From: Pelomyxa schiedti
Lineage: Eukaryota > Protista > Evosea
Length of the DNA: 32,193 bases
Direction: 5' to 3'
Assembly (NCBI GenBank): GCA_020536535.1
Contig: JAHLWZ010000993.1
Coordinates: forward strand, 1 to 32,193
Every line of letters begins with the position of its first letter. Position 1 is the first letter of the stretch. Below are positions 3,714 through 32,193 of this stretch, piece after piece. The notes under the pieces were generated by a model. The model made no database searches. It had not been told where the DNA came from and worked only from the letters and a program-made list of their open reading frames with translations. Made by a program: the position numbers and the translations under genes.

Positions 3714-3993
3714 CAAAAAGTTCGGTAGCCCCGCCAGGATTTGATCCCCTAGACTTACGCATTTTGCGTGTGTTGTTCAGACGCGTTGAACGCCCGAACA
3801 AGCGCAACCCGAACAAAGTGTAAGATTCGAAAGGGTGAAGGAAATCTAGCCACAGTACGAAAACAACCTGGAGCCCGGGGTTCCGTTTCGAAACCAAACA
3901 GTGTGGTGTTCGGGCGTTCAACGCGTCAGAACAACACACGCAAAATGCGTAAGTCTAGGGGATCAAATCCTGGCGGGGCTACCGAACTTTTTG
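3714..3993. mobile_element. Non-coding foldback/MITE-like element, copy 1 (87 bp inverted arms)
   Basis: 3714-3800 is the reverse complement of 3907-3993 with one mismatch (A3779/A3928). The internal 48 bp core 3818-3865 is identical to 31955-32002. No target-site duplication or transposase seen. Confidence 0.8.
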
Positions 3994-4882: not shown

Positions 4883-4992
4883 CTTGCTCTTTCGTCAATA
4901 ACTAACGGAGGCTTTGTTACAACTTGTTTCCTTTTTATCATTTTCGCCAATCGGAAATTTGGCAGGTTTGCCCCTGCTTTTTCTTGGTGTTG

Positions 4993-7900
4993 TTACAATG
5001 ACCAGTCTATTTGTTTCTGGTCTTCGTCGTCCAAAAGTTTGTTTGCCTGCGAGAAGTGTTTGCAGCCAAGGAAGTGCTTCACAGACAAAGGAGAGGGGTG
5101 ACCAGCTAAAGTTTGTAAGTAAACCTGAAATGGGGGTGATGTGCGAGGGGGAAATACACACCAGAGAGAATGTGGTGGGGTGGCTGCCTGATTAACTTGG
5201 CTTTGGTGTTGGCAGGGCCTCCCCAGAGCATGAAAATAACCGGTGTTTCCTTTTGGTTCACCTTGTGGGAGTTTAGTTGTATTCCTCAAATCAAGTGGGA
5301 GCCTTACGATATTGATTATTTCCGTGGTGAATGTTTCCCAACCTTGATTTGCGTGTGACATGGGTTTGTGTGCTTCTACAGTGAGTAGCGTGTTCAGTAG
5401 TAGCACCCCTTGCTTAGCCCATTGCTCGAGGTTACCATGGGATGGAATGGCAATTCCGGTATCTTCAAAGAAATTGAATACGATAAAGGAGAGGAAATTC
5501 TATCTAGTACCGGCATGCAACTCCTTGAAAATGTTAACCAAACTAGGAGGAGGAGGGACCCCCATTTGCACGGAGAAGCACAACCCGTGGGCTTGTCCCT
5601 TTTGTATGTAGGGATCTACAGGTTTTCAGTTGGTGTGTAAAAAACAGGTTAAAAACCTTGTCCCAAAATGACCACCTGCATTTCGTGAAAAAGGGCCTTT
5701 TTTGGTGGTAAATTACCTTTACTTTCGAAAGTGGACACAGGTTAAGAGCGTGGAACACGTGCTCGTTATCTGGAAATACTTCACATCTATGGCGTTGGGC
5801 TTCAACAAAAGACATTAATTTTTTGTAGTAAGGTTTCTACAATTGGTTGGATAATGAGGAAAATGAGACACGTAGTACCTCCATTTCAGTGGATAGTGCT
5901 TGGCGCCACTCTGTACAAGTAATTTGAGGGTAGCCAGAGGTAGATGATACAGTTGGTACCGGGCCGGAAATGAGGGGAAAGTCGTTGGCTTCTATAGTGA
6001 CAGGTTTTTTCAATTTTTTAGTAATGACTTTTCGTTGTGGCTTTGTGGAACAGGGGAGTAGGGCTTGTAGTGCTCCAAAAGAGATCTGTTGTGGTTGGCT
6101 CCCTGTGGAGATTGTATTCAGGGGATTTATTGCTGTTGCTGTTTCGTTTTGCCAGGTGGTCTCCTTCCCTGACTTTGGAGCACATCGTCTGAAGGAATCG
6201 AGAAGCTCGGAAATGTCATTGTCAACTGTTATTTTGTAAAGCTATGTGTCTTTGAAGGGCAAAATACCTCCGTAAACCGTGAAAAATGATGCAGCTAGTC
6301 CGGGATTGGAAGCCATCACGGATTTCAGTGTGTTCACAGCAGAAGGATCTATTCTAGACACTGCGCGCTCGACTGTGAGAAACAAGTTATCGCAAGTCAC
6401 CAAAGTGGGAACAATACTCTCAGGTGAAAGATGAACGAGAGAATTTATCACTGGCTCTATATTGGTAGAGAAGGGAAATTCTACTGCCTTGGGAGAAGTT
6501 GGTTGGAGAAATTGTTCTGCTGAAACGGCGGGATTTTCCTTCTTCAACAAATGTACAACAGAATCAACCAACTCAGCCAGAGACCCATCAACTGAAAGTA
6601 TTATTAAATTCAAATGCAGAAACAAGAAAGAATACCTTTAAAAACTTGAAGCATACAGCTGATAAGGGCCGCGTGGTTCATGGTTCCTGACGATTGTAGC
6701 ATAGCCTGGGCCAATGGTGGTGGAATTTTCCCTTCACGCTCCAGGGAAGAAATTGTGGATGTGAGAGACGGGCCTGTATGTTTTATAAGACGAGCAAAAA
6801 CGAATCGGCTTACTGAGTCTTGTGTCTGGGTTGCCAGATTGTTTTTGTGGGACAAAACTGGTGAAAGGGGATGGTTTTATTGCCAATGTTGAGGGTGCAG
6901 ATGTAACTTGTGTGGGAGCTTGTAGATGATCTTTGAATTTAGGTGCCGCTTTTTTAGGTGCTGCTTTTTTAGGTTTGGGTGCAAGCCCAGGCTTAGACTT
7001 TACAGGAATGGAGTCCGACGAAGCAGAGTCTTTAGACGAGGCAGCCTCTTCAAGCTGTGCTGGGGAGTAGTATATTTTTCGTTTTTGAACAGTTTGAAAT
7101 GGGCCTTTTCCATAGACTCTGGGAAGTATTACACAGTACCTGGGGCAAGAGAAAAATACCTTAACCAATCATTAAATTTGGCCAATTCTTGATCATTGCC
7201 GTATTTATTCAACCCTTGAAATATCAGGTAAAGGTACCCCGTTTTGTGCCAAAATAGTACCTTTTTGAAGAACTTCGTTTGGGATATCCTGACAAAGTTG
7301 GAGCAAGAGAGGCCCTTTGCTGGACTTAAGTACAGTGGAGGCAATGTCAAACGGGTTCACATTAGCTCGATGAAGTATCTCGGCTCTGAGATAATTTCCA
7401 ACACCTACAGTCATCATTTTTGGTATTTATTCAACGAAAGTTGTACATACCATTGAAATATTTTTGGTTTAGCATAACCTCACATATTTGTTTTTTGAAA
7501 TCCTGTGCAATTGTTCCATGAAAGAAAATGTATTATTGCGCATACCGAATGGCTAATATGTTTCATAACATTGTCACAGAACTCTTCATGTGCCTTCGTT
7601 TGGATTTATTTGTTGTAAAGTGTAAAAAAGAAATACATCAAGTGGATCAGGGCCCCTGTCAGGACCCCAGGATCCTTCACTCCAACTAGCCATCTTCATG
7701 GTGTCTGAGAGTCTGTGGATATGTAAGAGGGAAATAATAAGCAGGGAAGACTTACGTGAGGCAGTTTTTCCCATCTGTAGTGATAAATTCCAGTCTACGG
7801 CCCTCCACACTGTCCAGTGCCTGAGTACTGCAGAAAATCCACTTACCCACCTTAGGAAGAATTACGCAGTGCACTAACAACATGAAGGGCCTACAAGACC

Positions 7901-8266
7901 ATGGTTGAAACGAAGCATAATGGTCTCACCACTGTTCACAGAGGAGAAAGTCAGTACGAGTTCTTTTCCCCTCACCTCACTAGAAATCTTGAATGGCCTG
8001 GAGTAAATCAAGCAGGACCATTAGCTCCAACAATCTCCATCCCAACAACAAACAGAATACTTGAAAGTCGGCAAAGCTCCTGCATTTGGCTTCGTGGGCC
8101 CCGTGGTCCGCGCAACAGAGAACGTATCTCCAATGGAGTTGATGGTGTTGTTGTAGCGATGTACCTGCCGTAAAGAAGGGGGGAAAAAAAAAGGCAAGAA
8201 AACACGTCGTGAGTGTGATCCATTGAGTTGGGTGTAAGATCTAGTCACCTCTGGTAGTTCCGGCAT
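4993..8266 (-). CDS. Fusion DNA glycosylase: N-terminal NEIL1-like Fpg/Nei domain + linker + C-terminal family-1 uracil-DNA glycosylase (~800 aa, 19 exons)
   Basis: Nei motifs: [45 protein letters not shown] (H2TH), FNDWLRVYG, KRKIYY. UNG motifs: [74 protein letters not shown]. Eighteen GT-AG introns join all exons in one frame. Confidence 0.88.
6938..6975 (-). repeat. 15 bp coding tandem repeat encoding [12 protein letters not shown] (histone H1-tail-like)
   Basis: cctaaaaaagcagca cctaaaaaagcggca cctaaa on the minus strand, inside the glycosylase linker. Confidence 0.7.
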
Positions 8267-31877: not shown

Positions 31878-32179
31878 CATTTTGCGTGTGTTGTTCTGAC
31901 GCGTTGAACGCCCGAACAAGCGCAACGCCCGAACAAGCGCAACGCCCGAACAACGTGTAAGATTCGAAAGGGTGAAGGAAATCTAGCCACAGTACGAAAA
32001 CACTTCGAACCCGGGTCCCGTTTGGTCGATCTTTGTAGTTGCATGGATAGACATCACCCCCAACACCTAGTTTCAATTGTTCGGGTTGCGCTTGTTCGGG
32101 CGTTCAACGCGTCTGAACAACACACGCAAAATGCGTAAGTCTAGGGGATCGAAATCCTGCGGGGCTACCGAACTTTTTG
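31878..32179. mobile_element. Foldback/MITE-like element, copy 2 (left arm truncated)
   Basis: Left arm starts at cattttgcg (31878); core 31955-32002 identical to copy 1; right arm 32077-32179 is the reverse complement of 3714-3816 apart from small indels. Confidence 0.8.
31907..31953. repeat. 17 bp tandem repeat (aacgcccgaacaagcgc) x ~2.8 at the inner end of the left arm
   Basis: Units at 31907, 31924 and 31941 (partial). Confidence 0.85.
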
Positions 32180-32193
32180 TTTTCTTTTCTTTT

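Follow-up and report, generated by a model that had tools for sequence, protein, structure and literature searches.

A Pelomyxa schiedti gene joining a NEIL1-type DNA glycosylase/AP lyase to uracil-DNA glycosylase, and its counterparts in other eukaryotes

Introduction

Excision of uracil by uracil-DNA glycosylase (UNG) produces an AP site. A Nei enzyme of the Pro2 type cuts an AP site by beta,delta-elimination, which gives a one-nucleotide gap with a 3'-phosphate, and the phosphate is removed by PNKP. In a first-pass annotation of a 32,193-nt stretch of Pelomyxa schiedti DNA (assembly GCA_020536535.1, contig JAHLWZ010000993.1; here called the window), both enzymes were placed in one gene and a self-contained base-excision module was suggested. 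Here, we asked whether this gene indeed encodes one protein, whether the architecture is peculiar to Pelomyxa, and how its two activities may be related.

Results

Gene model and RNA evidence

The gene lies on the minus strand, from 8266 to 4993, and has 20 exons (19 had been counted at first) and 19 introns, all 19 of which are GT-AG introns of 40 to 84 nt. As the first-pass annotation had it for a product of about 800 aa, a single spliced frame runs from the ATG at 8266 (MPELPE) to the stop at 4995-4993 (IDWSL-stop). The 791-aa product matched the public P. schiedti record KAH3743406.1 (P0001), annotated as uracil-DNA glycosylase alone, residue for residue; exon 8, used as a query, had led to a database protein of 791 aa with 100% identity. 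The model was built from RNA joints where present and from homology elsewhere. Exons were searched singly, and whole-protein searches used the public record. The features, all on the minus strand, are as follows.

4993 to 8266, minus: whole gene, 20 exons, 791 aa, equal to KAH3743406.1 (RNA joints)
7058 to 8266, minus: NEIL1-type Fpg/Nei glycosylase/AP-lyase domain, aa 1-252, exons 1-10 (human NEIL1, Foldseek, Pfam)
8258 to 8263, minus: codons of catalytic Pro2 and Glu3 in the 18-nt exon 1 (sequence)
7964 to 7966, minus: Lys52 of the RGK motif, human NEIL1 Lys54 (alignment)
7691 to 7897, minus: void-filling triad Leu75/Met112/Met114 (alignment to human NEIL1)
7201 to 7209, minus: lesion-recognition loop N216-K217-Y218, human K/R242-G243-Y244 (alignment)
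7079 to 7081, minus: Arg245 of the zincless finger, human Arg277 (invariant in the fused-protein alignment)
6769 to 7057, minus: disordered Ser/Pro/Lys/Ala linker, aa 253-335 (pLDDT <50, composition)
6530 to 6768, minus: degenerate copy 1 of the four-helix domain, aa 336-400 (hhalign, family profile)
6179 to 6460, minus: four-helix domain copy 2, aa 424-488 (profile match 3e-13)
5921 to 6178, minus: second disordered linker, aa 489-574 (pLDDT <50, composition)
4996 to 5920, minus: family-1 UNG domain, aa 575-791 (TIGR00628, Foldseek, residues)
5657 to 5675, minus: micro-exon 16, 19 nt, where the GQDPY motif begins (contigs of libraries X1 and X2)

RNA evidence was available as contigs from three single-cell libraries (X1 to X3) of one sample in one study; because these runs may underlie the public annotation, RNA and annotation are not independent. 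Fifteen RNA joints defined 16 of the 19 introns; the five introns of the linker (5837-5878, 6226-6267, 6373-6417, 6592-6635, and 6774-6813) are all among them. Splicing was in frame across the linker introns, among them 6226-6267, which had been singled out for an RNA check, and no single contig in the three libraries spanned both enzymes. Overlapping contigs ran from the UNG end (4935) to 7013 and resumed at about 7072, covering parts of the Nei exons to about 7920; exons 1 and 2, most of exon 3 (7925-8266), and 58 nt within exon 10 (7014-7071) were left uncovered. In X1 and X2, contigs contain the letters of the micro-exon with the neighboring exons on either side. The joint of exons 1 and 2 lies in the uncovered region and was placed by comparison with homologous transcripts of Mastigella and Amoeba. 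Only intron 8165-8248 yields the N terminus of transcript-derived homologs, and the alternatives 8165-8205 and 8165-8203 were rejected on this ground. Retention of this 84-nt intron is possible and would keep the frame. At 4986, in the 3' untranslated region, two of the three libraries had T in place of G, an allele or strain difference.

The spliced linker of 322 codons was free of stops in the gene frame, while the other two frames held 16 to 17 stops. None of 20,000 shuffles was stop-free, and the analytical probability of such an open linker was about 3e-7. It had been claimed that no in-frame ATG precedes the first UNG helix; M358 (6702), M365, M374, and M457 (6316) contradict this, and exon 14 alone is without one.

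A divergent gene starts 367 nt upstream of the fusion gene (8633 onward, plus strand), and the two may share a promoter. Its first exon may encode part of an adaptor-complex mu subunit; the 65-aa piece had no Pfam match. A foldback element at 3714-3993, with 87-nt arms that are 99% complementary and 106 nt apart, has a second copy at 31878-32189, near the contig end, and looks like a small non-autonomous transposon.

A NEIL1 subfamily with an altered triad

The N-terminal domain (aa 1-252) matched human NEIL1 with an E value of 4e-33 and gave Foldseek TM scores of 0.77-0.83, depending on the target. Its H2TH motif scored 36.3 bits against Pfam PF06831 (cut-off, 34.7; E 5.8e-9), and both the Pro2-Glu3 nucleophile motif and Lys52 of the RGK motif, which mark the NEIL1 type, were present. 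The finger is zincless, with an invariant R245 in a two-strand hairpin (239-248) and no Cys4 finger. In contrast to the canonical NEIL1 triad Met81/Arg118/Phe120 (GMS, DxRRFG), the domain has L75/M112/M114. In the loop, the Tyr244 equivalent was kept, Asn216 occupied the position of residue 242, and an invariant Lys217 followed one place on. All fused proteins carried HGL (or FGL), DxxKM(G/A), and NKYG instead of the canonical FGMS, DxRRFG, and GYG, and the equivalent of Arg118 was replaced in every fused member of the alignment. The first-pass view that both active sites are retained thus stands for the catalytic residues it named and fails for the void-filling triad of the Nei part.

Arg118 of human NEIL1 holds the base opposite the lesion, and NEIL2, which is without this orphan-base arginine, strongly prefers AP sites (PMC10711445). 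Residue 242 of the human NEIL1 loop activates oxidized bases (PMC8257757). Judged by its motifs (HGL, DxxKMG, NKYG), the Nei part is a distinct NEIL1 subfamily without the orphan-base arginine. Both glycosylase and beta,delta AP-lyase activities are predicted for it. The loss of the arginine hints at a bias toward lyase activity or open DNA, and the domain probably still removes some oxidized bases; the invariant K217 may fill the role of human K/R242, in which case glycosylase activity would be normal.

The altered motifs were also found in unfused proteins of Acanthamoeba, Balamuthia, Endostelium, Clydonella, and Copromyxa (the last three from transcripts), so the altered triad is not in itself an adaptation to UNG. 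The genomic neighbors of the unfused Acanthamoeba and Balamuthia genes included no UNG. In a quick tree, 28 subfamily rows split from 36 canonical NEIL1 rows with an SH-aLRT of 82.

The UNG domain

The C-terminal domain (aa 575-791) scored 272 bits against TIGR00628 (cut-off, 186), with a Foldseek TM score of about 0.9. Its functional residues were intact, namely D635 and Y637 of the GQDPY loop, F648 and N693 of the uracil pocket, and H757 and L761 of the HPSPLS leucine loop, and uracil excision is predicted. A motif scan of the protein found no canonical PIP box. In a tree of UNG domains, the fused members did not form one clade; a single clade was neither shown nor rejected (p-AU 0.078) with this biased reference set, in which the unfused rows were bacterial-type matches chosen for likeness to the Pelomyxa domain and three loci entered as concatenated exon pieces.

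The middle region

The linker is not empty, since a four-helix domain of about 65 aa occurs in it twice, and the order of the protein is NEIL1-type glycosylase/AP lyase, two four-helix domains, and family-1 UNG. Copy 1 matched the family profile with an hhalign probability of 93.6% (E 2e-7) and copy 2 with 3e-13, and a homolog was modeled as four helices (pLDDT 90.6). The first linker (aa 253-335) holds a short Lys/Ala/Pro repeat, and the second (aa 489-574) a basic patch at aa 538-546. The middle domain belongs to no Pfam family and had no firm match in the PDB sequence, Atlas feature, or three fold searches. Its best Foldseek row was VEL1, with a TM score of 0.70 over 70 residues at an E value of 1.3 and 6% identity; VIA reached a Z score of 4.4, and the Zuotin and DAXX bundles reached 4-5, which is within the chance range for helical bundles and is taken as a lead only. 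The domain is not specific to the fusion enzyme. It is also present in four other Pelomyxa genes (L045, L046, L047, and L048), mostly beside Pro/Ser/Gln- or FG-rich low-complexity stretches, and is therefore probably a mobile module that serves protein contacts.

In the full predicted model, made from a 13-sequence alignment, the enzyme domains were well folded, the linkers had a pLDDT of <50, and the pTM was 0.41, with no fixed mutual domain orientation. A rigid two-domain enzyme is thus unsupported by the model.

Distribution of the fusion

In six named genera, Pelomyxa and five others, the Nei domain precedes UNG in the same way, and metagenomic data added about eleven eukaryotic proteins with this order. 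Transcriptome proteins represent Mastigella eilhardi (761 aa), Amoeba proteus (797 aa), Pyxidicula operculata (763 aa), and Rhizamoeba saxonica (partial), and the 816-aa Thecamonas trahens protein is genome encoded. We take these genera to span Archamoebae, Tubulinea, and Apusomonadida. Six of the metagenomic proteins hold both H2TH and UNG motifs in uninterrupted open reading frames (ORFs), which removes the splicing doubt for the architecture as such. In the Thecamonas genome, a single frame encodes Nei and the first half of UNG; a one-base frameshift within UNG may be an assembly error or real. A viral origin of the intron-poor homologs was rejected, as their neighbors were eukaryotic genes (Ras, GATA, VPS8, and kinesin).

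The Nei tree placed fused rows at no fewer than three positions, and one group (SH-aLRT 86) contained most of the amoebozoan fusions along with the unfused Copromyxa protein. Judged from this tree, one old fusion with losses and repeated fusions would both fit. The linker content varied: that of Thecamonas was without the four-helix domain, and that of the fused homolog P0041 had an extra WGR-like domain (aa 381-441) between its Nei part and its four-helix domain, at an E value of 3e-4, just below the Pfam cut-off. Two distant Nei-like proteins (P0084 and P0085) carry precomputed RRM or zf-GRF domains and represent other fusions of this family in protists.

In databases, the names of the fused proteins refer to the UNG part only. 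The literature searched, which misses most subscription papers, contained no description of either a natural Nei-UNG fusion or the Nei subfamily. It had been noted at first pass that no characterized protein with this architecture was known; the fusion is indeed unnamed in the databases and papers searched, but it is not unique to Pelomyxa. As far as tested, what is new is the architecture, together with its distribution and the altered triad; both enzymes are known.

Other repair genes in Pelomyxa

A check of the genome for stand-alone counterparts found motifs of an APE1-like (contig C954), an APE2-like (C1109), and an Nfo-like (C676) locus in exon pieces, three PNK3P loci (PNKP-like, 3'-phosphate), and one HhH-GPD match. 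Three further family-1 UNG loci were present, two behind a SAP domain (C852 and C914) and one downstream of BRCT/PARP (C952). The fusion gene was the only H2TH match in the genome, a search in which exon-split genes can be missed. In C952 (28500-38000), BRCT and PARP pieces lie upstream of the UNG on the same strand and probably belong to one large BRCT-PARP-UNG gene. UNG thus seems, from these arrangements, to be a readily appended module in Pelomyxa.

The SAP-UNG genes in C852 (L006:388-1870) and C914 (L007:348-1871) are near-identical. In the UNG tree, their UNG joined that of the Amoeba and Pyxidicula fusions (SH-aLRT 96) and not that of the Pelomyxa fusion gene, which hints at domain swapping. 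A family-4/5-like UDG of bacterial type, with introns, was found in C291 (L001:1168-1962).

Neither the loss of AP endonuclease nor a role as the only UNG explains the fusion, since APE1-, APE2-, and Nfo-like loci exist, as do three more family-1 loci and one family-4/5-like UDG. The fusion is thus not a patch for a missing enzyme.

Discussion

The best reading of the gene, in which we place about even confidence, is a hand-off from UNG to the lyase along a flexible tether. The product would be a single nuclear protein with two base-excision enzymes on a long flexible tether, which would let the Nei domain seize the AP site just made by UNG. Uracil repair could thereby become independent of AP endonuclease, as in the USER mix, in which UDG and endonuclease VIII leave a one-base gap (PMC2764453). 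Because two folds cannot share one AP site, the hand-off would work by local concentration and not through a composite active site. This reading agrees with the retention of catalytic residues across the fused proteins and with the flexible model, which has a low pTM and disordered linkers. A fuller version, in which an old protist NEIL1 lineage turned into an AP-lyase specialist and joined UNG, possibly repeatedly, and so gave a uracil-to-gap enzyme acting in cis and an AP-endonuclease-independent route of uracil repair, is offered tentatively. The self-contained module suggested at first pass survives in part: the single NEIL1-UNG chain is conserved, and the independent route is chemically possible with the PNKP-like genes, but gene loss does not force it, given the AP endonuclease-like genes and the other UNG loci.

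As the leading alternative, the two glycosylases might be co-localized and uncoupled, sharing chromatin or replication sites, expression, and nuclear import, with AP sites from UNG going to AP endonucleases and the Nei domain handling oxidized bases alone. We regard this as a real possibility, though we lean against it. Several findings suit uncoupled scanners. Three kinds of AP endonuclease are encoded, and UNG is also found at the C terminus next to SAP and BRCT/PARP domains. The linkers differ greatly in length and content, discosean relatives live with an unfused enzyme, and the fused UNG domains did not group as one clade. However, fusions of this pair in this order were retained or arose anew at three or more positions of the Nei tree, which suggests selection for the pairing, and the product of UNG is a substrate of its partner domain.

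It is improbable that the gene works mainly through separate isoforms, a 359-aa Nei-only protein with intron 10 retained and a four-helix-plus-UNG protein from M358, with the full-length form as a minor product. Below about 6740, RNA coverage is both deeper and less broken, and contigs of two libraries end at 6725-6739; the retained intron would yield a NEIL1-sized product, and 541-aa and 488-aa Trinity isoforms of Mastigella hold one enzyme each. Yet intron 10 is spliced in X2, exon 10 is spliced at both ends, the X3 contig end bears a tagmentation adapter and no start mark, and complete fused ORFs occur in transcriptomes and intron-free contigs. Contig depth, moreover, cannot rank the parts of a gene, and a 3' bias is usual in single-cell RNA libraries. 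A prediction artefact, with two adjacent genes wrongly joined, is very improbable. It would draw on the missing contig over both domains, the uncovered stretch of exon 10, and the RNA perhaps behind the annotation, but the linker introns are all spliced in frame, so open a linker is hardly due to chance, and the fusion is encoded by a single unbroken ORF in independent species.

Compared with human NEIL1, to which it has about 31% identity over the structural alignment, the Nei domain shares Pro2, Glu3, the RGK lysine, H2TH, the zincless-finger arginine, and the loop tyrosine, and differs in its Leu/Met/Met triad, in the loop NKY versus K/R-G-Y, and in being followed by four-helix domains and UNG in place of a plain disordered tail. 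[quoted passage not shown] The USER reagent (E. coli UDG and endonuclease VIII) draws on the same two enzyme families; it is a man-made mix of two proteins, whereas the fusion is one natural chain with a predicted NEIL1-type lyase. NEIL2, which prefers AP sites, is likewise without the orphan-base arginine (PMC10711445), and AtFPG with ZDP runs an AP-endonuclease-independent route in plant cells (PMC6728418). The Pelomyxa domain differs from NEIL2 and plant FPG in that its sequence and fold resemble those of NEIL1, its second loop is complete, and UNG is attached to it.

Since both parts are well-known enzymes, the novelty lies in the architecture and not in the chemistry. If the two activities are coupled, a USER reagent made of one protein might be developed from the shortest members (578 aa). 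The existence in these organisms of a NEIL1 subfamily whose DNA-wedge triad is altered runs against the statement of a 2019 review that Nei homologues are restricted to metazoans (PMC6728418). How an AP site passes on from a monofunctional glycosylase, and how much weight lyases carry where AP endonucleases exist, are open questions of base excision repair. The occurrence of the fusion across amoebozoan lineages and in an apusomonad permits a cis-versus-trans test, for which the unfused enzymes of Acanthamoeba and Balamuthia are natural controls.
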